A stretch of 64,000 bases of DNA, from the NCBI GenBank assembly GCA_946965045.2, contig OX337242.1, forward strand, positions 2,728,001 to 2,792,000. The letters are read 5' to 3'. A model generated the notes under the pieces. That model ran no database searches and had not been told where the DNA came from. It saw only the letters and a program-made list of their open reading frames with translations. The stretch is from Epithemia pelagica (lineage: Eukaryota; Protista; Bacillariophyta). Positions 1 through 58,974 of this stretch are shown piece after piece. A program made the translations under genes and the position numbers. Each line of letters begins with the position of its first letter. Position 1 is the stretch's first letter.

Positions 1-3000
1 ACGGACGGAGCAGAGCCTCGCAAGTTTGACTTCGACCTGGATGGGAAGACTGCCGACAACGAAATTCCACCGCCAGACATCATCCCACACGAGGAGGAGG
101 AACGGCCAACGGCGGAGGCAGAGTTGCTCAGGTACCACTACGACTTTGGGCACCTGCCATTCGCTAAACTACAACAAATGGCAAAGGACAGAATACTGCC
201 GAAACGACTGGCGAATTGTCACGTCCCAGTGTGCTCGGCATGCAATTTCGCCAAAGCAACGAAGCGAGCATGGCGCACAAGGTCGTCGAAAGACTGGTCG
301 AACAAGACACCTCCAAGCAAACCAGGCATGGTTGTGTCGGTCGACCAGTTAGTATCGCCCACACCAGGACTCGTGGCCCAGATGACAGGGTTCATCACGA
401 AACAGCGCTACAGATACGCTACCGTGTATGTGGACCAAGCGACGTCACTGGGTTTCGTTTTCCTGCAGAAGACTTCAACCGTTGAAGAAACACTGCAAGG
501 CAAGAGAGCTTTCGAGCGCTATGCTATGAACAGAGGAGTGTCAGTGCGTGCCTATCACGCCGACAACGGAATTTTTAAGGCACACGGGTGGGTGAAAGCA
601 TGCCACGACCAAGGGCAAGACCTCACGTTCGCGGCCGTTGGCGCCCACCATTCCAATGGAAAGGCGGAGCGTAGAATAAGAGAATTGCAAGGGATGGCGC
701 GCACAATGCTTTTGCACGCAAACAAGCGATGGCCACAGGCAATCACTGCCAACTTGTGGCCTTACGCCGTGCGCCATGCAAACGACTGCATTAACGCGGC
801 CCCTAATATGCAACACGAAACGAAGCAATCGCCAATCCAACTGTTTTCCCAGACAGCCATTAACACGAACAAGAAGCACTGGAGGCCCTTTGGATGCCCA
901 GTGTACGTGCTGGATGAACGATTGCAAGGGAACAAACCACACAATAAGTGGGAAAATCGAGCACGCGTGGGAATTTACTTGGGCCAGTCGCCAATCCACA
1001 ACAGGAATGTGGCACTGGTCCTCAACCGACACACCGGGCATGTAAGTCCACAATTCCACGTACGATTCGATCGCAGTTTCCATACCCTTCAACAGGAGCA
1101 ACTGACGGCAACGTGGCAAGTCAGTACATTCTTCGCTGACGCCAAACGAACCGGACAACCGCTGAGGAGCCAGAAAGGGAAACGACGGAGGAGGCACAAG
1201 GGGCAAGAGGGAGCCCCACAATACACTCCAACTGGCACTCCACCGGAAGAAAGGCAACAACAATTGCCAAACAACACATGGCCGGATGAGGCACCCAACC
1301 ACAGTCCAACCACAGGTCCACCAGGTGGGACGCCACCACAAGCAACACAGACCGGACGAACCATGGAACGAATGCCTCCAGTGGACTCAGAGGGAGCACA
1401 CGGCCAGAGGGAGCGGCAACCCCCGCAAACAACAACAACCAACCAAATGCGGACTAGATCGGGACGACTGCGTAAACCGACGCAACGCCTCATCGAAGTA
1501 ATGTCCGCAGAGGTAGAGGATGACATGACGATACCGGGGGAACTATTTGCTCTCACCACCCTCACACCGCAAGACGATATGGAGGGGGAGGACCCACTCC
1601 TAGCATACAAAGCGGCAATCTCCGACCCGGATACAATGTATCACCATGAGGCTATGAAAGAGCCTGACAGGGCGGAGTTTATAAAGGGCATGCAAAAAGA
1701 AATGGAGCGACAGATGGAAGATGGAAATCTCTCTATCGTGCGTCGCGATTCAGTCCCAGCAGGCCAACGCATCTTCAGGGCAGTATGGCAAATGCGCAGA
1801 AAAAGGGACATCATGACACGCGAGATCAAAACTCACAAGGCAAGACTCAATTTCGATGGGTCCAAGATGGAAAAGGGCATAGACTACGACCAGACATATG
1901 CCCCAGTTGCATCGTGGGCATCCATCAGACTGGTCCTAGCTCTGGTATCAGCATTCAATTGGCACACACAACAAATTGACTACGTCCTGGCATACCCACA
2001 GGCACCGGTCGAAAGGGAAGTCTACATGGAGATCCCAGTGGGGTATGATCTGGACGAAGGAAAGTCCAAAAGAGATTATGTCCTCAAGCTCCATGCCAAC
2101 CTCTACGGGCAAAAACAAGCCGGTAGGGTGTGGTACCAACACCTGTCCAGGCGGTTGGTGGAGCAGGTGGGGTTCACCAAGTCGGCTGTGGATGAGTGTG
2201 TGTTCTACAGGGGCCAAGTGATCTACGTCCTCTACACTGACGATAGTATCATAGTGGGTCCGGATCAGGCAGAGATTGACAAAGCAATCAACGATATCCG
2301 GGCGGCAAAGCTCAATATCACAGTGGAAGGAAACATCAAGGATTTCCTTGGCGTAAATATCCACAAGAGAGACAACGGAGAAATAACATTCTCCCAACCA
2401 CACCTTATCGACAAGGTGCTGAAAGGATTGCGTTTGGGATCCGACACAGTCCCAAAAGATACGCCCGCAGCACCGTCCAAGATACTCCATCGCCATCTGG
2501 AGAAGCCACCATTCGACAACAATTTCAATTATCGATCCATCGTCGGGATGTTGAATTACATCGAAGCAGGGTCAAGGAGCGACATAGCGTACGCTACACA
2601 CCAATGCGCACGCTTTGCCTCCAACCCACGAAAGCCACATGGAGACGCAGTCCGATGGATTGGACGGTACCTACACGCGACACGAGACAAAGGAATGTCG
2701 TTCCGTCCAGACAAGAATGCAGGCTTGGAAGTATGGGTAGACGCTGACTTCGCAGGCAATTGGAAGCGCGAGGACGCAACAACAGACCGTGATACGGCAA
2801 GGTCGCGACATGGGTACATCATCCGTTATATGGGCTGCCCCGTAATTTGGAAATCACAAATTCAAACGGAGATCGCCCTCAGTTCAACGGAAAGTGAATA
2901 CACTGGGCTGTCGTATGCGCTCCGAGCAGCCATACCGATAATGCGCTTGCTGGAAGAGATGCAACAACAAGGTATCCAAATACAGCAAACGCGAGCAGAG

Positions 3001-3237
3001 GTCCACTGTAAAGTATTCGAGGACAACAGTGGGGCGCTCGAGATGGCTAAGGTCTACAAGTTTCGCCCAAGGACCAAACACCTGAACGTCAAGCTCCATC
3101 ACTTCCGTACATACGTGGAGGATGGTAGCGTAACGATTCACAAAGTGGCAACTGAGGACCAACTCGCCGACTATCTCACCAAACCACTGCCGCGAGACAT
3201 ATTGGAACGACTGCGCAAACGAGTACTCGGATGGTAA
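1..3237 (+). CDS. pol: Copia pol polyprotein (5'-partial): integrase, reverse transcriptase, RNase H
   Basis: Frame is open from base 1. HHCC zinc finger (HYDFGH...CSAC); integrase D-D-E (SVDQ, HADNG, AERRIR); RT motifs (KARL, YGQKQAGRVW, YTDD); RNase H (VDADFAG, ESEY, FEDNSG, LADYLTK). Confidence 0.95.
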   Translation, partial: TDGAEPRKFDFDLDGKTADNEIPPPDIIPHEEEERPTAEAELLRYHYDFGHLPFAKLQQMAKDRILPKRLANCHVPVCSACNFAKATKRAWRTRSSKDWSNKTPPSKPGMVVSVDQLVSPTPGLVAQMTGFITKQRYRYATVYVDQATSLGFVFLQKTSTVEETLQGKRAFERYAMNRGVSVRAYHADNGIFKAHGWVKACHDQGQDLTFAAVGAHHSNGKAERRIRELQGMARTMLLHANKRWPQAITANLWPYAVRHANDCINAAPNMQHETKQSPIQLFSQTAINTNKKHWRPFGCPVYVLDERLQGNKPHNKWENRARVGIYLGQSPIHNRNVALVLNRHTGHVSPQFHVRFDRSFHTLQQEQLTATWQVSTFFADAKRTGQPLRSQKGKRRRRHKGQEGAPQYTPTGTPPEERQQQLPNNTWPDEAPNHSPTTGPPGGTPPQATQTGRTMERMPPVDSEGAHGQRERQPPQTTTTNQMRTRSGRLRKPTQRLIEVMSAEVEDDMTIPGELFALTTLTPQDDMEGEDPLLAYKAAISDPDTMYHHEAMKEPDRAEFIKGMQKEMERQMEDGNLSIVRRDSVPAGQRIFRAVWQMRRKRDIMTREIKTHKARLNFDGSKMEKGIDYDQTYAPVASWASIRLVLALVSAFNWHTQQIDYVLAYPQAPVEREVYMEIPVGYDLDEGKSKRDYVLKLHANLYGQKQAGRVWYQHLSRRLVEQVGFTKSAVDECVFYRGQVIYVLYTDDSIIVGPDQAEIDKAINDIRAAKLNITVEGNIKDFLGVNIHKRDNGEITFSQPHLIDKVLKGLRLGSDTVPKDTPAAPSKILHRHLEKPPFDNNFNYRSIVGMLNYIEAGSRSDIAYATHQCARFASNPRKPHGDAVRWIGRYLHATRDKGMSFRPDKNAGLEVWVDADFAGNWKREDATTDRDTARSRHGYIIRYMGCPVIWKSQIQTEIALSSTESEYTGLSYALRAAIPIMRLLEEMQQQGIQIQQTRAEVHCKVFEDNSGALEMAKVYKFRPRTKHLNVKLHHFRTYVEDGSVTIHKVATEDQLADYLTKPLPRDILERLRKRVLGW

Positions 3238-5725: not shown

Positions 5726-6850
5726 ATGAAACCACAGGACACCAAGAATGACAATATCATCAAGAATCCATCCACCAGTAGCACTCGGACAACCGTATCC
5801 TTGGAACTCTATCGTCAAGCATTGGCATGGAACAATGCGGCCGTGTCCTTACTAGAGCACGGTCAGGTTCGACAAGCCGTCAAGGTCCAACGGACATCCT
5901 TGTCCTTGTTTCAACAAGCGTTTGGTCGTCGTGGTCCTTCTTCTCGGAAACCAGGTACCAATCCTCCTATCCTACCGTTTGCGGGAGCCAATGGAAAATG
6001 GAACAAGAACGACTGCTTGTCGACACAACAAGTAAAAGCCGTGGACGACACTGACAGGACAGCCTTGGCCGAGGTAGCCGCTTGTCAAGATCGTTCGAGT
6101 CTCTGTTCTTTGTTTCAAAGTCTCGGCAAAACGGCCCATGGAGGAGGAGGACAACGAAAACCAGAGAAGCCTGTTGTCACACAGCCACAAGAAAAACACA
6201 TGCAAGATTCTAACGTGGTTCGCCTTTTCCCGGCTTACATTCGACAAGGTCCCAACACCAGCCCTATAGTCGATTCGACAACATCAAATGACCAGGAATC
6301 GACAACCAGCTTTGTGGCGCGTCAGTTAAGTATTTTGCTCTACAATCATGGTATTGCGGAATTGGTGCTGGTCATCTGTCATGGTAGTTGCTTCGGCAAA
6401 AAGCACTACCGCAAACCACAACAACGACAAATTGTCAAACATCTTCAAACTGCCCTGAAATCCCTGTAGCTATCGGAATTCGGCCTTGGTCACGATGGGG
6501 TGCACCCAGAAATGGCTCACAACGTCGAAACCCGACACATTGTTGTATTGCTTTCTACTCTGGTGGCGACATGTTTGCAACGACTTTGTCGGTAGTTATT
6601 GTTGTTTCTCGTCGTGTGTCCCGAACACCACCCGCCGCAAGAACCATCAGTAACTTGGTATCTGGAGGAATTGCACCGAGTCACGCGCCGAGTCATTCAT
6701 CTTCAAAACGAACGCATTCAGCTCGAACAACCACTAGAGCAACAGCAGTTTCCAGACTCGATTATGGGATACTACCAGGAAACCATGGGGCTGTTATCCA
6801 TGGCACATTGGTCCTCTGGATCGTCGGCTAGCAATGCTCCTGCGGCCTAG
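5726..6850 (+). pseudogene. Diatom-type helical-repeat (TPR-like) protein gene with two in-frame TAG codons
   Basis: ORFs 5726-6469 and 6599-6850 share a frame; TAG at 6467-6469 and 6593-6595. Motifs WNNAAVSLLE and ILLYNHGIA and a C-terminal APAA resemble a widespread diatom family (recalled, not searched). Confidence 0.6.
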
Positions 6851-8016: not shown

Positions 8017-8790
8017 GGTGGGGCAAATCTTCTTGAAACACAAAAACAATGAGATGTTGTTTCCCTTTGACGTGAAAAGAATAAGACCAGGTTGTGGTGA
8101 CAAAACCGATTTCTGAAGCTAATGTCCCTGGAAAGGTTTCATTCTGTTATTGAGAGTTCTCTTTCGGGAAGATATCATGACTTTCAACATTCGAAGACCA
8201 ACTTCTGGAATTAGATCCTGGTCAATACACCAAACCAAACAAATACTGCGCACTACAGTGAAGAATTCGGGTTTCGACTCTTCGTTAACTGTGACCTTAT
8301 GTTGTCGGGAGAACTTTTGTTGTCGAGTTGTCCGAGTGTACAAAGCTGTCATGGATTTGAAATTGTGGGGCTCGACCATCGGCACGTATTGTAAAACATT
8401 CATTGAACGAACCTAAGCTCATTGTTGTATTGTTATTAATTTGTTATGCCCAAAATTATGGAAATACGGTTGGGAGTAAGGCATAACTTTTAAAAAAATG
8501 GCTACCTGGTTGGGGCTTGTGGTCGACAAGGATGCCTCTTTTTCCTTGGCTGTTGTTTCAGAATTGCCCTATCCTGGCGCGCTAACTACTACTACGAGTA
8601 CAAACTAAAAGTGCCTGATAAGAAACGTAACGTGTACGAGTAGGCAGTGATTGACAAGAGTCACTGGCATTTCAGGGCAATATAATCTCTCTACGTTCTC
8701 TGCCAGAAATCCAAACAGATGATTTAAGTGAAAGACCAATCCAAATCCACGTCCATGGTTCTAATTATTTCAACTCTCCATCAGAGCTAC

Positions 8791-9004
8791 TTACCAGTCC
8801 TAAACGAGCGCGTCGTGTCGATGGCGCCAGCACAACATGGATCGGGCGCGCACCTTCCCCCAAAGAATGCGGCGCGGTCGACTCCTACCCAAGATAGATG
8901 AGAGAGAGACAGAGGAGCTCACAATCTTTGGTTTGTGCAGAGTCTCAAGCCATCACACGTTGTGACCAGAAGACTGGATCGTAGCGTAGACACCTAAACA
9001 AAAA
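8791..9004 (+). repeat. Split direct repeat A1
   Basis: TTACCAGTCC...CCTAAACAAAAA, identical to 16747-16960. Confidence 0.95.
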
Positions 9005-9044
9005 CTGTTCGATTGTTGCCTTTGCCTTTGCTTACTTTTTCACT

Positions 9045-11999
9045 ATGACATTCAACGAGAACCCTTTTGACCTCCCTTCCGGTCCCGACAAGACGATTCG
9101 TCGCTCTGATGCTGATGGTTTGGACCTTCTCGCGGATGTGGTGGAAAAGTCCTCGCTCCCAACCGGGACTACCTCGAAGTCTGCCAAGGCTGCGCCGCCT
9201 TCCATCCCGCCGAAGGATAAGGGCGATCCCTTACCCTCTGATGAAGATTCTGCCTCCGTCCATTCGAAGCGCCCTCCGAAGAAGAAGTCGAAGGTTGCTC
9301 GCGGGAATGGGATTCCCAAGTCTCCTTCCAATACTGCCAAGGTTACCCAAGATGACTTTGTTGATACCGATACCGATTGTCCGAAGACCCCAGAGAAAGT
9401 TCTTAAGAAGAAGAAGTCGAGCCTCAAGAAAGACCCAACCGTTGAGATCCCTCCTTTTGAGACTCCTCCTCAGTTTTATGCTCGAATGAAGAAAGCCCTC
9501 CCTTCCAAGACGTGTTGCAAGTCAGAGTTGTTCTCCTACCCGTTTCCCCTTGACGAGACCGTCAAGTCGAAGTTCGATGCCATTGATAGCGACTTCTGGT
9601 CCGACTCCTTTTGCCGACCGTTCCATTTGACCGTGGAAAGTGATCCCGCTCACTGGGATTCACTTCTCTGCAAGTTTGACGATGTGAAGACGCCGGCAGA
9701 TTTCCAAGCCTTCTTGGAAATCCATTCGAAACGGAATCCTTTAGCCTTCCTTGGCTTTGATCGAAAGAAGAACCCTGTTGTGATTCATAACATTTTCGTT
9801 TCTCCCGATTCCGGCTCGGTGCTTGCTCCGGACCCAGTTTTCCTTTGCTTTTGCAAAGATTCCCTAGACGTTCCCCCTGGTACATTTGACCCAGAAGAAC
9901 TTGCCTCGATCCTTAACAGCCTCGAATATCTTCGGATCCCATCCTTTGATGAGATTGTTTCTGCGTGCTTGATTAAAGATTCGGACTCCCTTTCTGGCCT
10001 TGCCTTTGACGCTTCCAAGTTTTCCGAGTTCGATCCTTACATTGCTTTTCCGGACAATCTCTCCGACAAGAAGGAAGACATCGAGTTTCGTCGCAAGCAT
10101 CGGTTTGATTGTAAGAGTATTGTGTTGCTTCCGCCCTCAATCTCTGGTGAATTAATCAAGTTCTTGGATCCCTCTTGTCACTCGGTGCACAAGAAGACCT
10201 CATACCCCAAGTTGAACATTCCGAACCTTGTTGCGTTCATCTTCGACAAAATTTTGTTGCGTTGGCGACGATCTTTTGAATACCCAAACTGCCGTCCCGA
10301 TTCCATCAAGTTCTCCGTTGAAGACCCACATTGTATTCGTTTTCGAGATACGATCCGTTTCCTTTGGGGAGTCAACCGTGGCAAAGTTATCGTTGACGAT
10401 ATCTTCCTTGACCACCCCTCTGATTTCGGTAATGCGATGACAGCCGTTGAATTTTATTTCAAGACCTCTTTACCGGATCGTTTATCTGCGATGTATTCCA
10501 CTCGTCGCGGCCCCCGTCCCCCAGCCTCCGAACGTTCTGGAAACTTTTCACCTTCGAAATCTCGACGCCCTATTCATGATGGTCCTGTTGACTCTTCCGG
10601 AAATAACGAGTCCGCTGGTTCCCCGAAGATCTCGAAAGATATCTTGTACTTTACTTCACAAATGACCAAATCCATGACTGAGCACATCTCGAATGCTATG
10701 AATGATCGTCAAGACAAATTGACACAGGTGATTACCCAACAGAGCTCGATCATGAAGTCTCAAGAAGACCGTTTGGACCACTTCAAAACCTTTACAATCG
10801 ATACGCGCAACGCTATCATCTATGGACAAGTTGGTCCTCATAGCACTTGTCTACCTTCCACTCCAACTGAAAAGGCTAAGGAGATCTTCAAGCAGAAGAA
10901 CACGCACAACCTTTATACGACCATCCACTCCCAGGTATTTCGGCGGTCCGATAACACGTGCTTCTTAATCTTCGGCCAAGTGGGAGTTATCCAAAAGTAT
11001 GGACTTCGATGGCGTTCCGAAGAGCATCCTGGTGGATTCTCCCCTTTTTCTTTCGATCCGAATAACCATTCGGGTGCCTCGAATCAACTAGCCCTGGATC
11101 ATGATATCCATCAAGATATCTTCGAGTCTTCCCTTCGTCACTCCAACGGCCTTTCCACGAAAGAAATGAAAGATATCTTTTCGGACGACAAGTTATTCTT
11201 TCCCTTAACCTCCGACCATTACGGAACTCAACTTCGGAGCTATCTGTGCTTTGCTGACGCCATTTGGGGCTCCGATTCATACATTGTCTCGAACATTCGA
11301 AAGATGTATGACCACCTACTTCGTCATCGTCGCGTGTATGTTGCCAATCAAGCCGATGACAGTTCATTTTTCTCAAGACTCTTGTTTTCCTTGGATAATT
11401 GCGTCCAAAACTTTATTGCTGATAACCTCGAAGATGCGACTTGTATCGAAGATATTTCAGGCGATGCGATTGACTTTCATACGAACAAACTCTGTAACAA
11501 GATCATGAGCAAAGAGGATATCTGTCGAATGCCGAGATTTTTGAATTCAGCTGTCCAAGCCAAGTACAGGAATCAGAACAATTCCAACAGCAATCATAAT
11601 AACTCGGGTAATGGTAGAGGACGTGGTGGTTCCGATTCTAAACTCCCTGGAAACCCACCCGGACCCCTGCGAGCAAAACGTGGTCGCGAACATCATTCTA
11701 ACTCCGATCCAGATGCTCCAACCCCTGTGAAACCAAACTTCAACTATCCATCAGCTTGGAAACTCCCCTCGGAACTGAAGTACGGGCGTACCTTCCCTCG
11801 CTCTGTTTTGAACGACGTCCCTTCCATCACGGTTGAGGGATCGACTCGCCAATTCTGCGTAAAATTTTTCTGCCTTCAAATTTGTCGTAGTGGAGAGAAA
11901 TGTTACTTCTCCCATGCCGATCCTTCACAACATGGGAAGCAAGACGAATTGGATGCATTTTTCAAGCAAGCTTTCGAGAGAGCCCGTAAGAACTCGTGA
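9045..11999 (+). CDS. gag: ORF1, gag-like protein (984 aa) with a C-terminal CCCH zinc finger
   Basis: ATG 41 bp after A1; basic disordered N-terminus; C-x8-C-x5-C-x3-H motif (FCVKFFCLQICRSGEKCYFSH) near the C-terminus; first-ORF position in the element. Confidence 0.8.
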   Translation: MTFNENPFDLPSGPDKTIRRSDADGLDLLADVVEKSSLPTGTTSKSAKAAPPSIPPKDKGDPLPSDEDSASVHSKRPPKKKSKVARGNGIPKSPSNTAKVTQDDFVDTDTDCPKTPEKVLKKKKSSLKKDPTVEIPPFETPPQFYARMKKALPSKTCCKSELFSYPFPLDETVKSKFDAIDSDFWSDSFCRPFHLTVESDPAHWDSLLCKFDDVKTPADFQAFLEIHSKRNPLAFLGFDRKKNPVVIHNIFVSPDSGSVLAPDPVFLCFCKDSLDVPPGTFDPEELASILNSLEYLRIPSFDEIVSACLIKDSDSLSGLAFDASKFSEFDPYIAFPDNLSDKKEDIEFRRKHRFDCKSIVLLPPSISGELIKFLDPSCHSVHKKTSYPKLNIPNLVAFIFDKILLRWRRSFEYPNCRPDSIKFSVEDPHCIRFRDTIRFLWGVNRGKVIVDDIFLDHPSDFGNAMTAVEFYFKTSLPDRLSAMYSTRRGPRPPASERSGNFSPSKSRRPIHDGPVDSSGNNESAGSPKISKDILYFTSQMTKSMTEHISNAMNDRQDKLTQVITQQSSIMKSQEDRLDHFKTFTIDTRNAIIYGQVGPHSTCLPSTPTEKAKEIFKQKNTHNLYTTIHSQVFRRSDNTCFLIFGQVGVIQKYGLRWRSEEHPGGFSPFSFDPNNHSGASNQLALDHDIHQDIFESSLRHSNGLSTKEMKDIFSDDKLFFPLTSDHYGTQLRSYLCFADAIWGSDSYIVSNIRKMYDHLLRHRRVYVANQADDSSFFSRLLFSLDNCVQNFIADNLEDATCIEDISGDAIDFHTNKLCNKIMSKEDICRMPRFLNSAVQAKYRNQNNSNSNHNNSGNGRGRGGSDSKLPGNPPGPLRAKRGREHHSNSDPDAPTPVKPNFNYPSAWKLPSELKYGRTFPRSVLNDVPSITVEGSTRQFCVKFFCLQICRSGEKCYFSHADPSQHGKQDELDAFFKQAFERARKNS

Positions 12000-14900
12000 C
12001 TGATTGTTGGATCGTCGAACACCCTCCTACCGACCTTTGTTCCGCCGCCCAAGATCAGCCCCAATACAATCAATGATCCCCTGGCCCCACTCCTCCCTTT
12101 CGGCGATCCTACCCTCTCTTCATCTTCTGACCCTCCAAACCCTTCCCACGATTTCCTCAAGACCATCCCAAAAGTCCCAGTGCCCTCTCCTTTAACTTCC
12201 ATCGATCCATCCCTTCCGATTGACCCAGGATTGTTACTACCCCCAAAGATCCTCGACCCTCCCCAACAGACACCAGCGTCAATTGACCCCTTCTCCTCAT
12301 CACAACCTCTCCCTATGCCTTTGTCCAAGTCGATTTCCTTTGCTCCAACTTCCGAACTTTTCCCTTTTGACCCAATCGTAGCCCCTTCCTGTCGCTTGGA
12401 TGGCCAAGACGACACAACCCCCCTCAAGATTGACACTGAGACCCCACCACCCCTTACTGATGACCATTCCCTTTCCGATCCTCTCCTTCCGGTCAATCAG
12501 AATCTTCTTTCCTCCGTCCGCCGAGCTGCCGACGAATCAAGCCTTCCTCCTTCAATCCTCTCCCTTCGGAAGCAACCCTCTACCATCGATCCCTCCCTCC
12601 CAGGACATGCCACTCCAAACATTACGACCAACACGTCAGGAAAACCGTTGGAACGTAACTTGCTTCGACTTCAAAACTCGTTAGTTGAGAATCAAGCAAT
12701 CATTGGTAAGTCCATTTCCTCTTCCTTTCCTCCATACCTTTCCAATTCGATCGAAGATCACTTCCCTTCACCGATTACAATCCCTCCCCTACCACCTCCA
12801 TCCCATCCATTGAACATCGATACAATCCTTTCCGTTTTTCACTCGACCGTCCCAACCCCGAAAGCATCACCGTTTATTCACGAACGATCCGTAGCAGCTG
12901 CCGAAGCCAACTCTGTGTTAATTGCAAAGTATGATCACGACCTCCAAGCCCTTTTCGACGCCCACCCAGGAACCACGATAAGTCCAGGCTCGGAATTTCG
13001 ACCCCCATCGATACTCAAACCGCTTCTTTTCGGTCACCCATTTTGGCCGAAGATAGAACATGACTTAACATTTGGAGCCACGTACCAGTTCCGCGATGAC
13101 CTTCCAGATGATGATGCTCGAGTTGCCGAGAACGAAGCATTGATCGCTTACGGAAACCACAGCTCCGCCCGCAAACGACCTGCAGCGTTGATAAAAGTGT
13201 CTCAAAAAGACACGGTTCATGGTTGGGCTTTCCCCTTAACTTTTGACTGCGCTCGAAAAATTAAGGGAGGACGATTTGCCCCACTCGGGGTCGCTCAGCA
13301 CAACGGAATCACCGAGCGCGGCGAGATCATCGTAAAAGACCGCCTTGCACATGATCAAACGTTTTCAACCGGATTAGCACCCTCCCTCAACCTTGCCGTT
13401 GACGACAGCGATGACATTGATCTGGTATATGGTTGGTGTATTGAGAGATTGATTCACCAAATCGTAGCACTACGACTTGAATTCCCTCGTACACGGATAC
13501 TCGTTTGTAAGTTCGACTGGGGAGCGGCGTACCGACGTATAAACGGCGATGGACTCCTCGCTGCGAATGCCTTGACAACCGACGCGTCTGGTGAATTTGC
13601 TAATATTCTTAGCCGACTGTCATTTGGCGGCAAGACACATCCCGCAATGTTCAGCTTGTTCTCGGAAACAGCTTGCGACCTGTGCAACGACCTCATCGAA
13701 TTTAAGGAGTGGAATCCATCGATCTGCTACTCCCCCCTCCAAAAACTGATGGGCCCACCAAACCGCCTACCCGAAGATATCCCTTTCGAACAAGGGAAAC
13801 CGTTGATTGTTGATATACCTGCAAGACCAGATGGCTCAGTGGACGTATATCTCGACGATATGGTCCAACTCTTCGCCGACGAAGAGGACATTGTCTCAAG
13901 AACGAGTGCCGTGGTGCCGCTAGTACTCCACCTTTTCATCCGACCCTGCCAACCCGATAAAGAACCAATCAAACGAACGGACATACTGGCCGAGGACAAG
14001 ATGATGGCCGAAGGAAGTCCCAGTGAAGTTATGAGAGTCCTGGGCTGGGAACTTGACACACGACGTCTCCTATTGATACTTCCCATTGACAAGTACTTAA
14101 ATTGGTCCAAAGCCGTGCGACATTTGGCTGACCCGAAGACGCAAAAGACAAAATTCCGTGACCTCGAGACAACGGTCGGTAAATTGATACATTCCAGCAA
14201 GGGTATCCCCCTGGCGCGATTCTTCCTCCAGCGTACGCGGACGTACATGGAAAACTTGATCAAGCAATACGACGACAAACAAAGATCAGCGGCCGACGAT
14301 AGTGACGACGACGACGACGACCAATCCTCCATCTCAAGCTCCGGCACAGTTGGCTCCGACGGCGACCAAACAGTCCCACAACGAAGCAGCGACGCACGCT
14401 TCCGACCCAAACCTTGGTTCCGCTACGCCGTCCCCGAATATGTCAAAGAAGACATGACAGTCTGGATAGATCTACTCGAACGAGCGCACCAAGGCGTCAA
14501 CTTGAACCTCCTTACTTGCCGCAGACCCACAAATATTCTGCTGGCAGACGCATGCCCCTTGGGAATGGGCGGGTACTCGATAAAATCAGGCATAGCCTGG
14601 CAAGTACCGCTGGACCCGAGTGTTTACGAGATGGCAGGACACGCGGACGACCTCGACATAGACCCAACACTTTCATCGACGACCGATCTCAAACTGTCCA
14701 ACAATCTTTTTGAGTATATTGCGCAAGTCGTAACCATATGGCTCGAGCAACATCATGGTGACATCGAAGACTTGGGATCTGTACTGTGCATGTCGGACAA
14801 CAGTTCCGCTATCGGGTGGCTCCATAAAAGCTCGTTTGCGACGAATCAACCCCTCCATCGGCGGGTCTCCGAGAAACTCGTCCGAATGGCGTTGTCAGGA

Positions 14901-15749
14901 CAGTTTACCATACACGCCGAGCACGTACCCGGCAAACAGAACAACGTTGCCGATTACCTCTCACGAACTTTCGACAAACCCAAAGACGAGATTACTAACG
15001 ATGTGCACCGTCTTTTCCCTTCCCAGATTCCGAAAAATTTTCAGGTCTGCCAACTGCCACACGAAATAGAATCTTGGATCTCCTTGGTCGCTCCGCAGCG
15101 ACAAGGATATTCTTCGGCAAGGTCGAGTCAAGCCATGAATCCGGAGACAGGACATGGCGCAGGTGGAGAGAACACTTGCAACTCCTCAACCTTGACCACG
15201 ACCCCTTTTTGGACCAAGTCACGGACACAAGAGACAGGCTCACCATCGTATCCACGTTCCTGCAGCGACTCCGAGACGGCGACTTTAACCGAGGAGGGCA
15301 TCGCGGAACGCTTCGTGCGTCAACTGTCGAGAAAGCCGTTGGCGAGCTGGCGGCGACTTTCCGGCGTCACGACCGGCAGAGCCCCGCCCACATCCAAGGT
15401 GGCAACAACTACCACCCTACTATCGCGTCCCTCAAGAAGGGATGGAAGAACCTGGACCCTCCAGAGCAACGGGAAAAGGCAGTCACCCCAAGACACTTGG
15501 TCCATTTATGGAAACAAGCATGTACACCGAAACCCAACACCGCCGACTCCACCTCGACGGCGCCACAAGCGACATCAAACACCGAGAACAAGGAACAGGT
15601 ATTCACCGACAAGACAACCAAACAGCCCCAATACGAAACATCATCATTCAGAGCCTGTAACGCCGACCTCCTCTGCGGAGGATACTTCTACGCAACACGG
15701 AGTTGCGAGATCTCCACAGTCAAACAACGAGGAAAGACGAAGATGCTGA
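12000..15749 (+). CDS. pol: ORF2, reverse transcriptase + RNase H (DIRS-like); same frame as gag
   Basis: RT motifs (KDRLAHD, CKFDWGAAYRRI, RLSFGG, YLDD) and RNase H (LADAC, NLFEYIAQ, SDNSSA, HVPGKQNNVADYLSR). Frame is open from 12000; first ATG only at 12315. Confidence 0.9.
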   Translation: MIVGSSNTLLPTFVPPPKISPNTINDPLAPLLPFGDPTLSSSSDPPNPSHDFLKTIPKVPVPSPLTSIDPSLPIDPGLLLPPKILDPPQQTPASIDPFSSSQPLPMPLSKSISFAPTSELFPFDPIVAPSCRLDGQDDTTPLKIDTETPPPLTDDHSLSDPLLPVNQNLLSSVRRAADESSLPPSILSLRKQPSTIDPSLPGHATPNITTNTSGKPLERNLLRLQNSLVENQAIIGKSISSSFPPYLSNSIEDHFPSPITIPPLPPPSHPLNIDTILSVFHSTVPTPKASPFIHERSVAAAEANSVLIAKYDHDLQALFDAHPGTTISPGSEFRPPSILKPLLFGHPFWPKIEHDLTFGATYQFRDDLPDDDARVAENEALIAYGNHSSARKRPAALIKVSQKDTVHGWAFPLTFDCARKIKGGRFAPLGVAQHNGITERGEIIVKDRLAHDQTFSTGLAPSLNLAVDDSDDIDLVYGWCIERLIHQIVALRLEFPRTRILVCKFDWGAAYRRINGDGLLAANALTTDASGEFANILSRLSFGGKTHPAMFSLFSETACDLCNDLIEFKEWNPSICYSPLQKLMGPPNRLPEDIPFEQGKPLIVDIPARPDGSVDVYLDDMVQLFADEEDIVSRTSAVVPLVLHLFIRPCQPDKEPIKRTDILAEDKMMAEGSPSEVMRVLGWELDTRRLLLILPIDKYLNWSKAVRHLADPKTQKTKFRDLETTVGKLIHSSKGIPLARFFLQRTRTYMENLIKQYDDKQRSAADDSDDDDDDQSSISSSGTVGSDGDQTVPQRSSDARFRPKPWFRYAVPEYVKEDMTVWIDLLERAHQGVNLNLLTCRRPTNILLADACPLGMGGYSIKSGIAWQVPLDPSVYEMAGHADDLDIDPTLSSTTDLKLSNNLFEYIAQVVTIWLEQHHGDIEDLGSVLCMSDNSSAIGWLHKSSFATNQPLHRRVSEKLVRMALSGQFTIHAEHVPGKQNNVADYLSRTFDKPKDEITNDVHRLFPSQIPKNFQVCQLPHEIESWISLVAPQRQGYSSARSSQAMNPETGHGAGGENTCNSSTLTTTPFWTKSRTQETGSPSYPRSCSDSETATLTEEGIAERFVRQLSRKPLASWRRLSGVTTGRAPPTSKVATTTTLLSRPSRRDGRTWTLQSNGKRQSPQDTWSIYGNKHVHRNPTPPTPPRRRHKRHQTPRTRNRYSPTRQPNSPNTKHHHSEPVTPTSSAEDTSTQHGVARSPQSNNEERRRC

Positions 15750-16525
15750 CGATGGCAAACGTGGTGTTCGGCCGATGCGATGCAACCCGCTCCCGCATCG
15801 ACCCTCGCGACCCCAACTTTTACGACGAAGCATATTATGTCTCCATAACTTTCATCGCGCAAAAACACGACATCCCTCATGAGACGCGGACGCAAAGCAA
15901 GACAGAGGACCCCATACTTTGCCCCGTCCGAATTTGGGGACGAATCCTGCGACGCATCTTCCACCACCAGCCAAACGCGCCACCAGACACGCCGGTGAAT
16001 TGTTGGTTTCCTCCCCCAACAGCCAAAAACCCAAACCCACCACCGAGATTCATCCGCGCCGAAGACAGTCTCAAGCTCCTCCGCGAGACGTGCACTGACC
16101 CATCCACAAAAGAACCGTTGTTCGGATACCAACCAAGCGAAATCGGCACACATTCAATCCGATCCGGGGCGGCAATGGCCCTCTTCCTTTCGCCCGGCAT
16201 CTCCGTATTGCGCATCATGATACTCGGCCGATGGCAATCAGCCGCGTTTATGCGGTACATTCGACCACAAGTAATGGAGTGGACGGCGGGCATGTCCATC
16301 GCCATGCTCAATACGCCAGACTTCCGACACGCCGACCCAACAGGCGTTCCCAATACCAACAACAAGACCAGTGAAACATCGAAAGATACGAAAAATTTAA
16401 AACTCTCCGACATCGAAGCGATCCAACAGAACCTTGAATTCGCCATCGACTCGCCCGAGGAACTAACATTCAATGGCTCCGTGACCACTGCTTCCTTCGA
16501 CCTTCAACTTAACTTGGAATTCTAA
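14999..16525 (+). CDS. ORF3, tyrosine recombinase overlapping the 3' end of ORF2 in the -1 frame
   Basis: Catalytic motifs TRSCE (R), HSIRSG (HxxR), GRWQS and RYIR (Y), with an N-terminal core-binding region. Frame is open from 14999 with no ATG before the catalytic Arg. Confidence 0.92.
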   Translation, partial: RCAPSFPFPDSEKFSGLPTATRNRILDLLGRSAATRIFFGKVESSHESGDRTWRRWREHLQLLNLDHDPFLDQVTDTRDRLTIVSTFLQRLRDGDFNRGGHRGTLRASTVEKAVGELAATFRRHDRQSPAHIQGGNNYHPTIASLKKGWKNLDPPEQREKAVTPRHLVHLWKQACTPKPNTADSTSTAPQATSNTENKEQVFTDKTTKQPQYETSSFRACNADLLCGGYFYATRSCEISTVKQRGKTKMLTMANVVFGRCDATRSRIDPRDPNFYDEAYYVSITFIAQKHDIPHETRTQSKTEDPILCPVRIWGRILRRIFHHQPNAPPDTPVNCWFPPPTAKNPNPPPRFIRAEDSLKLLRETCTDPSTKEPLFGYQPSEIGTHSIRSGAAMALFLSPGISVLRIMILGRWQSAAFMRYIRPQVMEWTAGMSIAMLNTPDFRHADPTGVPNTNNKTSETSKDTKNLKLSDIEAIQQNLEFAIDSPEELTFNGSVTTASFDLQLNLEF

Positions 16526-16586
16526 AAGATGGACCGAAGATACCTTGAGGTTCCGAGCGGAAGACAATGTCAAAGATTCAATGGTG

Positions 16587-16746
16587 TTGGGAGCCATCTC
16601 GGTTCCCTCTGGGCCTTTACGGCAAACTTGCGACTACTCCCCCCAAACTAGTAGTCTAGCAAAGATGCCTAACCGTCTAAGCTACAGACTTGGTCGCCCT
16701 AAGAACAAAGCGCCGTCAGGATGGGTTCGTTGGGTACCACCCATCG
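16587..16746 (+). repeat. Split direct repeat B1
   Basis: TTGGGAGCC...CCCATCG, identical to 16978-17137 and directly fused to A2. Confidence 0.95.
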
Positions 16747-16960
16747 TTACCAGTCCTAAACGAGCGCGTCGTGTCGATGGCGCCAGCACAACATGGATCG
16801 GGCGCGCACCTTCCCCCAAAGAATGCGGCGCGGTCGACTCCTACCCAAGATAGATGAGAGAGAGACAGAGGAGCTCACAATCTTTGGTTTGTGCAGAGTC
16901 TCAAGCCATCACACGTTGTGACCAGAAGACTGGATCGTAGCGTAGACACCTAAACAAAAA
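16747..16960 (+). repeat. Split direct repeat A2
   Basis: Identical to 8791-9004. Confidence 0.95.
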
Positions 16961-16977
16961 TAACCCCATACCCGCCC

Positions 16978-17137
16978 TTGGGAGCCATCTCGGTTCCCTC
17001 TGGGCCTTTACGGCAAACTTGCGACTACTCCCCCCAAACTAGTAGTCTAGCAAAGATGCCTAACCGTCTAAGCTACAGACTTGGTCGCCCTAAGAACAAA
17101 GCGCCGTCAGGATGGGTTCGTTGGGTACCACCCATCG
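16978..17137 (+). repeat. Split direct repeat B2
   Basis: Identical to 16587-16746; separated from A2 by a 17-bp spacer. Confidence 0.95.
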
Positions 17138-17600
17138 GGTAGAGAACCGACAAAGAATACAGATTGATAGAAAATAGATCAATAATTGAATTATTAAATT
17201 TTTCCCCGCTCGCGGTCCAGTGTTTTGTCTTCTCTGTCTTTTCCTAATTCCTTTATTGCTTCCAATTCTCGCATCTAGCAGGAGCAAGAAGGCCCGGATT
17301 CTCATTGCCTTATGCCCTCCCAATCCCAACCATTGACAGTTGACAGTCGCTCTTTTCTTGCGTCGCTTGTCGCTAAAGGATTTCTAAATCAAAAATCAAA
17401 AATCAAAATACGGTCCCAGGAGATGGGGTAATCCTGAGCAGGTCGCTACCTTACCAGTCAGATACTGACTGGTACCTATAGGAGTTACCGAACGCTTTTT
17501 CTGCATAAAGAACACTCTAGCGACAAAAGATGACATACCGACTGCTAGTACTATTAAAACCCACCACCACCCGGTTCATAACCGCTACATATTTGTACTG

Positions 17601-22101: not shown

Positions 22102-22296
22102 AGTAAGGCCGTTCCCAAAACGGACCCGAAACCAAATCGAAAAGTAAGGCCGTTCCCAAAACGGACCCGAAACCAAATCGACAAGTAAGGCCGTTCCCAA
22201 AACGGACCCGAAACCAAATCGAACAGTAAGGCCGTTCCCAAAACGGACCCGAATTCATTCTTTCAGTAAGGCCGTTTTAACGGACCCGAAACCAAA
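22102..22296 (+). repeat. 41-bp tandem array (about 5 copies) immediately upstream of the ATG at 22312
   Basis: AGTAAGGCCGTTCCCAAAACGGACCCGAAACCAAATCGA starts at 22102, 22143, 22184 and 22225, with a variant at 22265. Each unit holds CCGTT-N-AACGG. Confidence 0.95.
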
Positions 22297-22311: not shown

Positions 22312-23739
22312 ATGGCCCGGGACCGTCGACCCAAGGCGCCTCCAAAGGCGGCCTCAACAACATCCACGGCAGCAACCGCTGCTGTGAAATCTGAATCTCG
22401 TCCCAAAAAACGGGAACAAGAGGACGATGACAACTTTTCGATCTCGACTCCTATCCCGAAAAAGAAATCCAGGACGAAAGCGCCTGTGGATTCGGAGGAG
22501 GAAGAGGAGAACGAATCCGATGATGAAAACTCAGTCGTACCAATCGACAAACCTCCCAAAAAGAAGGGGGACTCCTCAAAAACGGCCGCCTTGAAAAAGG
22601 ATGAGTCGGATGAAGAGGAAGACGACGAGGAAGTCGAAGATGACTGTCCTATATTCGAGGACAAGACTCTCGCTTTGTCCAACTACCTCCCCCGCCATCG
22701 GACCAAAGTCAATAATTTTATGAACGAAAACGTTACGGCTTCCGCGGCGATCGCATTGGCAAATGCCATTGACGAGAATGTATGGTTCCCGCTGGGTCAA
22801 ACGACTCCTGGCGCGGATCTATACGGGTTCAGCCTGATTGCTCAGGCCAACAAGGTGCCGTTGAAAGAAGACGAGACGCTAGCAATGGCTATGAACAACC
22901 GCATTACGTCGTTGATCAAGCCTTTGTACAATTTTCAGAAAATCGAAGAAGCCAAGTTTAACTTGAGCGATTACAGCATCCCCACTCCAGTGGTGGTTGT
23001 CTTCCCGAGCAAAGGCGATGCCAAATACAAAGGCTTTGCTGTTTGTGGATCATGGATCTACGTTGCCAAAGAGAAGTACACGATGGAAGCAACCCAGCAG
23101 AACTTTTTGAATCTGGGTTACATGGAAATCGTGAACGAGAAAGGCGATCGTGTTCGTCACAAACACAGCCGATCCAAATTGGAAGAGACGACAAGGCGCC
23201 TCGAACAGGCTGTCACGAGTCTAGAGAACAGTGTCTTGGACATCAACACTGCCCATTTGGAATCGAGCATCAAAACGGAAGACACCACTCGGCGCCTCGA
23301 AGAGGCTGTCGCTGGATTGGTGTCGAGTACGAGCTCGATCTTAGAGAAGCTTGAACAAGGGACAAACAAGCCCTCCGGTTCATCTGAAGCTACTCTTGCC
23401 GAGTCTCCCGACTCCAAGGGAAAGGTTGGACCTCCTCCGGAAGCAGAAGGACCGGAACAGACCGACGAGGATATGATTCCTACCATTCCTTCTCCAGCAC
23501 CGGAAGCGGAAGCGAAATCGACCCCTCCCAAACCCACGGTTATCAACATCAGCCGAGGTGAAGTTGTTCTACAGAAGGGACAAATGCTCCGTGTCCGAAA
23601 GGGCATCAGGCATTTTGCCATTGTCCCCAACAAGGACTATGTCACAAAACTCCTACAAAAAGAAGAACAACGACGCAGGGAAATGGCAAACGCCGCCCTC
23701 AACCCGAATTCACACCATGTCCATGCGTCTCGCCGTTGA
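22312..23739 (+). CDS. Hypothetical protein (475 aa): acidic/basic disordered N-terminus, globular middle, coiled-coil repeat
   Basis: Long ATG-initiated ORF with a duplicated helix (LEETTRRLEQAV / TEDTTRRLEEAV). No family recognised. Confidence 0.65.
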   Translation: MARDRRPKAPPKAASTTSTAATAAVKSESRPKKREQEDDDNFSISTPIPKKKSRTKAPVDSEEEEENESDDENSVVPIDKPPKKKGDSSKTAALKKDESDEEEDDEEVEDDCPIFEDKTLALSNYLPRHRTKVNNFMNENVTASAAIALANAIDENVWFPLGQTTPGADLYGFSLIAQANKVPLKEDETLAMAMNNRITSLIKPLYNFQKIEEAKFNLSDYSIPTPVVVVFPSKGDAKYKGFAVCGSWIYVAKEKYTMEATQQNFLNLGYMEIVNEKGDRVRHKHSRSKLEETTRRLEQAVTSLENSVLDINTAHLESSIKTEDTTRRLEEAVAGLVSSTSSILEKLEQGTNKPSGSSEATLAESPDSKGKVGPPPEAEGPEQTDEDMIPTIPSPAPEAEAKSTPPKPTVINISRGEVVLQKGQMLRVRKGIRHFAIVPNKDYVTKLLQKEEQRRREMANAALNPNSHHVHASRR

Positions 23740-24184: not shown

Positions 24185-27100
24185 TTACATGGACTCTTCC
24201 GAACTTTGGGTCCCATTGTTAATTCTGCGATTGGGACAACCAAGAAGATGAGGTGGGCGTCCGTTCCGATTAGGGCGTCTCACCCATTCTAAAAAAGCTT
24301 GACAGCAAATCTGTTGTTGTGCCTTGGGGCGTTTGGTACGAGCGATGTCTCTCCACGACCACGACGACGCAGATGCCTGTGAGCAAATCTCAATGGGACT
24401 CTCTCGAGTGCCCGACATTTCAATTGCCTTCCTGACACCCTCAGGAGGAGTATATTTTACCTTATAAGGATTGGTGATCTTGACCGATGAGGGAATACCC
24501 GAAGCATCGGAGACACGATGCTTGGAGGCCACAGACTTTTTCGCAGGCGTCTGCTTGAATGCTTGAGAAAAAATCGACGGTGCACTCAGGACATCGATAC
24601 AAACGGGCTCTTCGAAAGGATTGCCAATAGTATCCTGTGTTTTGGGTTCTTGTTGGGTTGGCACGATGGTTGCAATCTCTGCCGAAGTGTCCAATTCAAT
24701 GCGATTGGTGCTGATCGTGTCCACCTCGACACCATCACATTCCATAGAAGGTGGAAGTGAGCACGATAGCTGCGAAGGCGAGGCCGTTGGAGGAACGGAC
24801 GCCCTACCCGATCGTAACTCGTGTGGCAACGGCGTTGGATTATGCCCACACGCCCGACAATAACAACGATCAGACAAAGGACTTGTCTCCACTTCGGCTT
24901 CTCTCTGGAGTTGCTCCGACAAGTACTGGGCGAAGAAACGCTCACCGTTGTCTTCGGGGAGAGGACGAGCATAGTCGAAGGGTGACACCGGATAACCAAT
25001 GGATTCAGCCAATCCATTGGCGAAAGTCAAGTCACTATGATTGAAAAACTCGGGATGGTTCTTCCATCCTGAAGGAACATTGGGGCGAGAAACACTCGAC
25101 TCCTCCGCCATACGGATCTTGTGACGAATCTTGGTGTTGTAACGGGCAGTGCCCACCAGATTCAATGTATCACACAGATCCGCCCTCATTCCGCAATTAG
25201 CGAAGTGGGCCAACTGGTCGTGGTACTGCTCGACCTTGGACTCACATCGTAACGAGATATATTCGTTGCACTCGTGTTTTGTGGAAGGTGTTGGTTTGAT
25301 TACACGATAAGTTTCGTGTAAAGGCAGGGCATCCTGGATGTGGACTGCGTTCTTCATCTGTTCGGTCACGGCGGTCTTCGTGTCGACAGTGAACAGCTTC
25401 TTACCAGTACTTGGATCAGTATCGCCCTTATACTGGTCCATCCACCTCTGCAAGTTATGAGCGATCACATCCGGAGGATGTATCTGCTTCATAAGGAACT
25501 TGGAGTACTTGCGGCGGAACTCCGGTCCCGACTGCATCTCCAATATTTCAGCAGGGGAAAGAGGACCAGACCGTCCCATTTGACCCGCCTTCAATGCCTT
25601 GAGCAAGGCATTGTACGAGTCCGGCTCGAAACCATACACGCATTCCAAGAGCTCATTAAGAGCCTTGTGGTAATGGCGATGTCCCTGGCGCATTGTTTTG
25701 ATGATGCGCTGTTGGAAATGGTAGAGTCCAAGACGACCCTCCAAGGTATCTCCAAAGAGGAGTTTCCAGAACTCACACTTCTTTGGCCATGTATCGCTAT
25801 ACATGGAAACGGGGTTGAAACCCTTTCGACGGGCTAAACATTCAGCGGCATGAGCAAAAGACTTTGTCTTTGTGTCCTCGACACAAACGGCTGAGGCAAT
25901 CTCTCCAGTCTCTGTCGCCGAATCCCAAACGGCCTTGATTCCAAGGGATTTTTTATAATTCTTGGCGACCTCCATAGTATGATCCTGGGCGAACATACTG
26001 GAGGTCGTGACGGATTGTATCTCCCTGATACAACGATCTTTGTCCGAAACGCCATAGTTGTTGGCCGTGGAAGTCGAAGCACGGTCAAATAAATCACGGA
26101 GCGAATCTCCTGATGGTGGGAAGGTGGGGAGATATTCGCCCGCTAACTCCGGATACAAAGGGACGCCCAAAGGGGCGTCACTTACACCAATGAGACTCTT
26201 CCATTCCGACAGATATTCTGTGAATCGCCGGAGATGAGTGTTGGTGATGCCAGCATAAATGGAGCGCGACAATTTGTCGGCGTTACCATATGTCAGCATG
26301 TTCTCTTCGAGTACATGACTGCATGCCCGGTCAAGATGGAACATCATACCATTGTCGGCGAACTTCGGTTCGACCGGATAAGCCGACCGAACATGAATCG
26401 GAAGGGTCATGAGAACTTTGGCAGAGTTCCCATCATATCGCATTGGGCATTTTGAACATTTGTACGACATAACAATGGCCCAGTCGGGGGGACCATTGAC
26501 GTTAAAAATGGGAAACAACTTCTTATTCTTTGAGAAGTTGCTGCGGTCTCGGCGCAATGTCCCATTATCGCAATCTGGACAGGGGATGACAATGCCAGGG
26601 AATTGGTCTTCCCAGCAAACATTGTAAATCCTCTGACCCTCAATCGAATGATAATGAGGGTCAATTGGCTGTCCATAACGGACGACCGGAATCTGGAATT
26701 CCAGTGTCTGTGGTGTGAACCAATTCTGTTCCTTGTGGTTCAATAAATGGCGGGTAACTGCCATTATTGGTAGGGGAACCCCATTCTTCTTCTCGGTTGA
26801 GGAAGAGACAAAGTCCGGGTCGGCCATTGCATCTCGCACTGCGTCGTGAAGATTTGTATGGTTGGTTCTCTGAGGAGCCACCATTTGCTGGGCGTACTCA
26901 CGTACGCTCGGTTCTGCGGTCGATATGTTAAAAAAAGTCCCCGTGAAGGGCTTTTCGTTCGTAGCGGCAAGTTTCTTGTCGTTCTCTTCGGATTTCACGG
27001 TGGTTTTGTTCTTATGCCCCTTCGTCTTTCGATTGTGGGGGCAAAGAACATGGTGTCCTCGATGCGGCTGTTTTAGCCCATTGAGTTTGGTGTAGCACAT

Positions 27101-27460: not shown

Positions 27461-28062
27461 CCCTCTTGGTTTTGTTTTTGTTTTTAGAATTATGAGAATA
27501 GTCGTGCGTTGTGCGTTTTTTAGAGAGCTGAGGAGGGAATTTTTCGTGTTGGCATTTTCTGGTGAACTCGGTGGGGAATCGGCATGTTCCGAATTCCTTC
27601 CGACCGGGACCACCGACTTTGAAATATTGAATAGTGTTACTTAGATGTTTTTTATAGCTAATTGGATCGCAATTGGATTTTTTTAGTCTAATTATTAGTG
27701 TTGCTCCGACAGTTGGTTGACAGTTGGAGGATAGTGATAGGGGGGAAAAGGCACCAATCAGATCGCTGCCTGAGGAAACTGCACCCCTCCCCCCAGCACT
27801 AAAAAGCTAGGAGTATCCAGTTAAAAAAGCTCTGATAATGAGCTAGTTTGGTTCCCGCGATCCCCAGTTCCAGTCTCCAGTCACGCGACCGAACTACCAC
27901 GGCATGGTGGTCTAGTCAAGAAGTCAAAACTCTAACAACCTACTCCTAGTCAAACCCTATGGACCCATCCAAATGTGCTCCCATGCACATGCACAATGCA
28001 TGTCACACATGAACTATTAAATTCATATCCATTTTAGAACAAGGTACAACTACATGGATTCT

Positions 28063-54083: not shown

Positions 54084-54283
54084 TTTTGTGTTGCTGGATG
54101 AGTGTGTTTGTGTGAGTGATGGGCTTGTCCCTGATGCGGATTTTATGATTACACAAGGATGGGCGAAGGAAGCCAATGCGGAATGGATTGAAAAGAGAAA
54201 AAAAGATGAGCGAGAGGTTGCAGTCTTGTGAGTATCGGGAGTCGTTTGGGGGACATAACGGTGGATGAAGGTGGAATTTTGTA

Positions 54284-58934: not shown

Positions 58935-58974
58935 TTGGAAGCTTGCTTATTCTTGTCCAAGTTCTGATTTCATC

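Follow-up and report, generated by a model that had tools for sequence, protein, structure and literature searches.

A retrotransposon of the tyrosine-recombinase (YR) type in the diatom Epithemia pelagica is predicted to carry the core of its reverse transcriptase (RT) and RNase H inside one large alternative intron. The element was analysed in a stretch of 64,000 nucleotides of contig OX337242.1 (assembly GCA_946965045.2, positions 2,728,001 to 2,792,000 of the forward strand); this whole stretch is referred to as the window and all coordinates are given within it. Comparison with related elements argues strongly for 12706-15026 as the best-supported intron. We regard it as likely that the genomic RNA carries this one large alternative intron and that a scaffold made by readthrough from gag is completed either with RT/RNase H or with the YR. 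The features on which the prediction of the intron is based are as follows.

12706-12711 (+), predicted conserved 5′ splice site GTAAGT, phase 1, at pol residues 236-237 (G-K)
14993-14999 (+), candidate branch point TACTAAC, 27 nt upstream of the AG, partly conserved
15010-15026 (+), pyrimidine tract and predicted conserved 3′ splice site CAG (15024-15026), phase 1
12706-15026 (+), predicted retained or alternative intron of 2321 nt; in the unspliced RNA it is the RT/RNase H core, with 773 open codons
12000-12705 (+), PolN, the first 235 codons of pol; Pro/Ser-rich, with a conserved RN..RL helix motif at its end and no conserved AUG
15027-16525 (+), predicted downstream exon encoding the tyrosine recombinase; its first in-frame ATG is only at 15743

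A search with the YR frame matched 323 sequences in the database clustered at 90% and, when run exhaustively, 1819; these include Epithemia and Fragilaria proteins and MMETSP transcripts. In total 89 related loci were retrieved, and the counts given below use 61 distinct or 62 loci for the tests of the acceptor and of the YR start. Acceptor and donor columns were compared in codon-threaded alignments. The splice signals, their phases and their conservation at the nucleotide level were read directly from these sequences, as was the fact that neither an AUG nor a slippery site for the YR is conserved. A slash within a motif or between two coordinates marks a splice junction.

At the 3′ end of the intron, the pyrimidine run TCTTTTCCCTTCC stands ahead of the CAG at 15024-15026. 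At the corresponding site CAG was found in 60 of the 61 distinct loci and AAG in one; the synonymous codon CAA was found in none. Among the glutamine codons elsewhere in pol, 408 are CAA and 329 are CAG. The aligned CAG occupies the same codon in 35 loci and lies one codon upstream in 25, and the YR-frame codon that opens with the acceptor G encodes a variable residue (D, G, A or V). Since CAG is never replaced by CAA and the YR residue varies, neither reading frame explains the invariant G. Third positions of the pol codons from −6 to −24 are 81% pyrimidine, compared with a background of 52%. An NCBI gene model from Fragilaria crotonensis (MHU86_16410) puts an acceptor at exactly the same AG, with a TACTAAC 30 nt upstream. 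The copy in this species is on contig JAKSYS010000329.1 of assembly GCA_022925895.1. The donor of that model (G/GTATGG, in RNase H) was rejected, as it is unconserved and the consensus there is G-L-G-G. By these comparisons the CAG at 15026 behaves, strongly above chance, as a conserved 3′ splice site. An earlier sequence-only reading of the window had named this CAG and its pyrimidine tract as the acceptor, and both are present and conserved. It had also named a second acceptor, TTTTCAG/ ending at 15044, which is present and in the same phase but is not conserved across loci. The perfect TACTAAC that it took for the branch point is likewise present and includes the TAA (14996-14998) that closes the YR frame; it is, however, only partly conserved, the three copies of the motif in the window correspond to the chance level, and its placement 27 nt before the AG is no more than suggestive. 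In 32 of the 62 loci a YTRAY motif, in most cases CTAAC or CTGAC, precedes the AG by 15-50 nt.

A scan for GTRAG over gag and pol revealed the donor ATT G/GT AAG TCC at 12705/12706, in phase 1 and 709 nt 3′ of the gag stop. All main-group elements have N/GT-RAG-T at this column: the first codon is GGT, AGT or TGT, the second AAG or GAG, and the third begins with T. The encoded residues vary (G/S/C, K/E and S/Y/F/C) while GT[AG]AGT is fixed. The background usage of these codons is 14% of Gly for GGT, 10% of Ser for AGT, 38% of Cys for TGT, 52% of Lys for AAG and 51% of Glu for GAG. In about 24 distinct elements GT[AG]AG[TC] is invariant. Wherever a locus extends at least about 2.2 kb upstream of the AG, this phase-1 donor is present at a distance of 2105-2321 nt, which gives 21 distinct donor-acceptor pairs. 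The conserved donor is also present in two divergent subgroups (L052/L055 and L072/L074) and in F. crotonensis, and in L001 and L031 it was seen once internal frameshifts had been allowed for.

The pair G/GTAAGT ... TCTTTTCCCTTCCCAG/ follows the GT-AG consensus with both sites in phase 1 (donor in about 24 and acceptor in 61 distinct elements), and the predicted intron is an open reading frame (ORF) of 701-773 codons in the pol frame in 19 of the 21 loci checked. As an invariant GTRAGT lies at that distance from the conserved AG, the intron is placed at 12706-15026 rather than at 11986-15026. The sequence-only reading had described the whole RT/RNase H region as a 3-kb intron that starts at the end of gag. 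That the region is enclosed by splice signals is borne out by the conserved GT...AG pair, but the extent is not, the conserved intron being 2321 nt long. The same reading had suggested that its donor, TACTAAC and AG be compared in other copies and diatom homologues: the AG is kept, TACTAAC is kept in part and the donor at 11986 is not conserved in position, while the other donor, at 12706, is kept.

Three long frames occupy the element: gag, pol and YR. The YR frame is open from 14999 to 16525 and is in the −1 frame relative to pol, as it is in all loci with upstream sequence. In these loci pol continues for 125-150 codons beyond the start of YR homology, and the part of pol that follows the predicted intron is listed here.

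15027-15749 (+), C-terminal extension of pol, in the pol frame (+1 relative to YR), read from unspliced RNA

Within the overlap the pol frame is kept open and conserved (LP.EI.SW and KPLASW.R.SG.T.G) and ends at a similar place across lineages, and the −1 frame encodes the conserved N-terminal domain of the YR (DRTWRRW...). The pol frame of the relatives ends at a residue equivalent to about 1127-1170 of pol in the window (about 15380-15510); the open frame of the window beyond this point is not conserved. Because the pol frame is conserved through the overlap and stops at a similar point, we take the overlap to be truly dual-coding.

In the window the first ATG of the YR frame (15743) lies downstream of the codon for the catalytic Arg (15698-15700). 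Of the 62 loci, 15 have an ATG in frame at most 45 codons from the AG; the other 47 have none there, and its position is not fixed. The sequence-only reading was therefore correct that the YR frame has no AUG of its own, both for the window and for most relatives. Stops in the YR frame abut the AG in L003 (TAA TCAG/) and in L007 and L080 (TAAG/), zero to one codons upstream of it, so the YR frame cannot be entered upstream of the AG. Two further proteins were considered and rejected as evidence. The 'M' of P0004, a possible start codon of the YR itself, is a GTG picked by a prokaryotic gene caller, as are the apparent 'M' starts of the YR in general, and an ATG is not conserved. P0151, seemingly a single RNase H-YR ORF, is explained by a 1-nt indel in a single metagenome contig, L088, whose acceptor is intact.

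The frames upstream of the predicted donor are joined by a single stop codon. Pol is a 1249-codon frame (12000-15749) that lies in the frame of gag, with TGA as the sole separator.

9045-11999 (+), gag ORF, 984 amino acids, with a C-terminal CCCH-like zinc knuckle and a TGA-C end (TGA at 11997-11999)

This separator is TGA in 14 of 14 distinct same-frame lineages, followed by C in eight, and is never TAA or TAG (lineages as listed: the window, L001, L010, L013, L017, L020, L024, L031, L035, L040, L041, L066, L080, L081 and L083). It is a single same-frame stop that is conserved in kind, as is expected of a leaky stop. In L052/L055 and L072/L074 gag overlaps pol in another frame. The in-frame ATG of PolN is not conserved, and L081 is without any. 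As PolN has no conserved AUG and the in-frame stop is always UGA, the YR is probably translated by readthrough from gag, as a fusion. The conserved stop also points to programmed UGA readthrough for Gag-Pol.

In the proposed expression model the unspliced RNA would serve as the genome and also as the mRNA for Gag, and readthrough of the UGA at 11997 on this RNA would give Gag-PolN-RT-RNase H followed by the C-terminal domain of pol. Splicing of 12705/12706 to 15026/15027 would remove the RT/RNase H core and join the 235 PolN codons, via a new GAT (Asp) codon, to the AUG-less YR (...NQAII-D-SEKFSGLP...); the predicted junction sequence is ...GCAATCATTG/ATTCCGAAAAA. The YR would then be an alternative C-terminal module on the Gag-PolN readthrough scaffold, with PolN common to both isoforms, and the fusion, of about 1720 predicted residues, would be packaged through Gag. 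The sequence-only reading had proposed that the YR is made by alternative splicing and tethered to Gag for packaging. The conserved signals agree with the splicing, and the YR product is plausibly tethered to Gag, but the direct join to Gag is not upheld: in the predicted product PolN stands between the two, and UGA readthrough would be required.

Two further sites were considered in weighing other routes to the YR.

11986-11991 (+), candidate donor C/GTAAGA of the sequence-only reading, phase 1, a possible alternative 5′ splice site
15035-15041 (+), A_AAT_TTT, a formally perfect −1 slippery heptamer in the pol frame, unconserved and with no nearby stimulatory structure

The donor at 11985/11986 is present as described, 11 nt before the gag stop. 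Spliced to 15026 it would remove an intron of 3041 nt and give, as the main or as an alternative route, a direct Gag-YR protein of 1479 amino acids that bypasses the UGA, so that readthrough is no longer needed. The arithmetic of this join is correct (...ERA-H-SEKFSG..., 980 + 1 + 498 = 1479 residues; junction 11985/15027, ...GAGAGCCC/ATTCCG), but the conserved intron is the one of 2321 nt. The site is in phase 1, fits GTAAGA and is kept in a 99% identical copy. However, its phase carries little weight alone, because GTAAG or GTGAG in phase 2 creates an in-frame stop; a statistic on the best donor near the gag end being in phase 1 was accordingly discarded and replaced by a positional enrichment test. 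Taken over the lineages, the final 100 nt of gag are about eightfold enriched in phase-1 GTRAG. Such a site is found within 100 nt of the gag stop in five of the 14 lineages (−11 in the window, −62 in L083, −74 in L001, −17 in L035/L041 and −71 in L080), which amounts to five sites in 1.4 kb compared with 15 in the remaining 33 kb of gag (Poisson P = 5e-4; K/E-aware binomial P = 0.0016), although the 100-nt interval was picked post hoc, after the data had been seen. Nine of the 14 lineages are without such a site near the gag end, the position itself is not conserved, with no usable GT at that codon in L083, L084, L085 and L001, and the universally conserved donor lies elsewhere, at 12706. A 97% identical but decayed copy (L086) has GC at this donor and is uninformative. 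Splicing from 11986 is unlikely to be the route to the YR; to judge from its distribution, the site could be a lineage-variable alternative donor and not the conserved mechanism. For a short intron from 11986 into PolN, across the UGA, many in-phase AGs are available in the pyrimidine-rich PolN, none of them conserved. A further phase-1 GTAAGT at 13507-13512 (T/GT AAG TTT), within RT motif A (CKFD), is in phase with the acceptor; sites like it occur in a few relatives, at no fixed alignment column.

Translation of the YR alone, from a subgenomic transcript or by internal or non-AUG initiation just 3′ of 15026, would agree with the in-frame ATG that some relatives (the 15 loci noted above) have 7-40 codons past the AG, and DIRS-type elements are usually drawn with a YR ORF of their own (PMC3266345, PMC6681497). 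It is nevertheless very improbable: the window has no ATG ahead of the catalytic Arg, the ATG is missing from the other 47 loci and is not conserved in position, and the conserved donor-acceptor pair would be left unexplained. A programmed −1 frameshift from pol into the YR at A_AAT_TTT, yielding a Gag-Pol-YR polyprotein, deserves hardly any credence. The YR is in the −1 frame of pol in all loci, and the heptamer in the window is perfect and lies 9 nt past the point at which the YR frame becomes usable. Yet the constant −1 relation is a trivial consequence of an inherited dual-coding overlap, and the heptamer is present in only six of the 62 loci, the closest outgroups having C_AAT_TTC and G_ACT_TTC. 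The predicted downstream fold is not significant (z = −0.84), the nearest hairpin is about 35 nt off, and a frameshift leaves the invariant AG, the pyrimidine tract and the GTRAGT unexplained.

Several points also weigh against the reading preferred here, the alternative intron 12706-15026 coupled to readthrough of the gag stop. No transcript evidence was found for the splicing. The upstream exon is without an AUG, so the model requires a second unproven step, UGA readthrough, and no stable structure was found after the UGA. A branch-point motif occurs in only about half of the loci, and in the window the other phase-1 donors, at 11986 and 13507, could compete with that at 12706. The 2.3-kb candidate greatly exceeds the usual size of diatom introns: the mean intron of Phaeodactylum tricornutum is 142 bp (PMC5859163), and the candidate is about 16 times as long. 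No intron-less retrocopy was found among 80 metagenome loci. No match listed joins Gag or PolN to the YR (best 120 and best 150 of two YR searches, all 19 gag matches and three PolN matches); these searches covered top-ranked matches only, mostly from DNA assemblies, so that the absence is weak evidence. The 19 matches of the gag query are all of 1029 amino acids or fewer, with no fusion; the best 150 matches of the YR query against 1.84 billion representatives are all of 512 amino acids or fewer; and the three matches of the PolN query are all unspliced pol ORFs. Pattern searches with regular expressions and BLAST of the listed YR matches for gag-like or PolN-like N-termini gave none.

The proteins of the element were identified mainly by their predicted folds. 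No Pfam model recognises the gag, pol or YR ORF, and searches of the PDB with sequences and profiles of the element proteins gave no matches. An AlphaFold model of the region 12708-15026 (predicted local distance difference test score, pLDDT, 79) was matched by Foldseek to the RTs of Moloney murine leukaemia virus (MMLV), cauliflower mosaic virus (CaMV), xenotropic murine leukaemia virus-related virus (XMRV), Ty3 and human immunodeficiency virus (HIV), with E values of 1e-7 to 1e-5, and also to foamy-virus RT. The motifs YLDD, DAC..G.GG and ADYLSR are visible in pol, which thus has the RT and RNase H expected of the DIRS order. The YR was modelled with 17 homologues (pLDDT 70), and its best PDB match is Cre recombinase (Foldseek E 2.8e-6), followed by the Tn1549 integrase Int and XerA/D/H. 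Residues R234, R388, W412 and Y420 (numbered from the opening of the frame at 14999) are catalytic and invariant in the YR alignment. The frame thus has the residue pattern R...H/K-x-x-R...H/W...Y and the modelled Cre-like fold of the tyrosine recombinase expected in the DIRS order. On these Foldseek matches the domain calls of the sequence-only reading for RT/RNase H and YR are right. Pfam detected no integrase or protease in the element ORFs and no recognisable family in the C-terminal domain of pol (about 140 residues).

The boundaries of the element are defined by two pairs of repeats.

8791-17137 (+), complete YR retrotransposon (8.35 kb), bounded by split direct repeats
8791-9004 and 16747-16960, split repeat A1 and A2, 214 nt, 100% identical
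16587-16746 and 16978-17137, split repeat B1 and B2, 160 nt, 100% identical

The order A1...B1-A2-B2 is the canonical split-direct-repeat arrangement of Ngaro/PAT-like elements. No inverted repeats of 20 nt or longer were found within 8600-17300, whereas elements of the DIRS1-like type carry them at their termini, together with internal complementary regions. We take the element to be a YR retrotransposon of the DIRS order that is Ngaro/PAT-like. As both repeat pairs are identical, the sequence suggests that this copy is young. The ENA assembly ERZ21939226 holds copies that are 97-99% identical to it. One 99% identical copy (L087, contig ctg1347l of ERZ21939226, 2470-10387) is internally rearranged, with element positions of about 5987-6644 replaced by a B-A repeat junction, which is the expected outcome of recombination between split direct repeats or tandem copies. 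In several metagenome contigs (L010, L013, L020, L023/L024, L041 and L080) the YR gene is followed, 2-4 kb further on and in the same orientation, by the gag and pol of another copy, so that the elements often appear to lie head to tail.

The window as a whole (1-64000) is rich in transposable elements. It contains a copia-type RVT_2 ORF at 124-3237, a Harbinger-type DDE_Tnp_4 ORF at 33604-34890 with an adjoining DUF6818 ORF at 34919-36259 (−), and two long ORFs without a Pfam match, at 22312-23739 (+) and 24185-27613 (−). Inverted repeats of about 0.5-1 kb at 49831-50883 and 58958-60007 (537 nt at 94% identity plus flanking pieces) flank a silicon-transporter gene at 52431-54176 (−) and a major facilitator superfamily (MFS) transporter at 55026-56246, and another inverted repeat set is found at 40847-41543 and 45881-46583. 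The silicon transporter marks the host as a diatom. Tandem repeats have a 21-nt unit in at least nine copies and a 41-nt unit in three copies (32542-32812 and 22102-22253).

The element resembles the Ngaro and PAT elements in its gene order (gag, RT/RNase H, YR), in its split direct repeats, in the absence of a detected protease or DDE integrase, and in a YR ORF that is frameshifted and overlaps pol. It is unlike their descriptions in the conserved GT...AG that brackets RT/RNase H, in the unusual length of gag (984 amino acids) and in having three ORFs that Pfam models miss. Ngaro elements have no methyltransferase domain and usually no overlap of their ORFs (PMC3266345), and the pol-YR overlap of about 125-150 codons present in all our loci is atypical of them. 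With DIRS-1 of Dictyostelium and other DIRS1-like elements it shares the YR and RT/RNase H as well as a long pol-YR overlap with the catalytic YR domain in the non-overlapping 3′ part; the inverted terminal repeats and internal complementary regions of that group it does not share, and no methyltransferase domain could be demonstrated in it. Reviews of the DIRS, PAT and Ngaro groups describe YR ORFs that in many cases are frameshifted, overlap pol and have no start codon; the reviews consulted give no mechanism by which such an ORF is expressed and do not mention introns or splicing (PMC3266345, PMC3783388, PMC6681497). In the literature found on these elements, introns or splicing are not named as a route to YR expression.

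Spliced subgenomic RNAs are described for copia-type elements, namely Drosophila copia, barley BARE and Arabidopsis copia (PMC5580714, PMC3735527). As in these Ty1/copia elements, an intron within the coding region of the element would set the protein output, with the unspliced RNA as the genome. In Ty1/copia the spliced mRNA lacks pol and encodes Gag alone, which tunes the Gag:Pol ratio. The present element would instead swap RT/RNase H for a recombinase on a shared N-terminal scaffold, using a dual-coding exon. Retroviruses make spliced subgenomic RNAs (for env, and for pol in foamy viruses), and gammaretroviral Gag-Pol is made by stop-codon readthrough. In a similar way, the model proposed here combines a leaky in-frame gag-pol stop with alternatively spliced genomic RNA, through which downstream genes are reached. 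Unlike the retroviral integrase, which a protease frees from the Pol polyprotein, the YR of the element would be reached only by splicing out RT/RNase H, and a protease was not detected.

We lean towards the view that the arrangement is shared by a large clade of YR elements in diatoms, and perhaps more widely in stramenopiles, in which RT/RNase H forms a conserved alternative intron, the downstream exon is dual-coding and each scaffold carries either RT or YR. For annotation, a GTRAGT about 2.1-2.3 kb upstream of a pyrimidine tract and CAG, both in phase 1, can serve as a rule, which would help to model abundant elements that are missed completely by current Pfam models. If the model is true, the exchange of RT/RNase H for the recombinase explains the overlap of pol and YR. 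For the DIRS order it would provide the first mechanistic account of the expression of YR ORFs that overlap pol and have no AUG, and it may extend to other DIRS and PAT elements with long pol-YR overlaps. The element would then represent a new retroelement strategy, in which modules are exchanged by a combination of splicing, stop-codon readthrough and a dual-coding exon.

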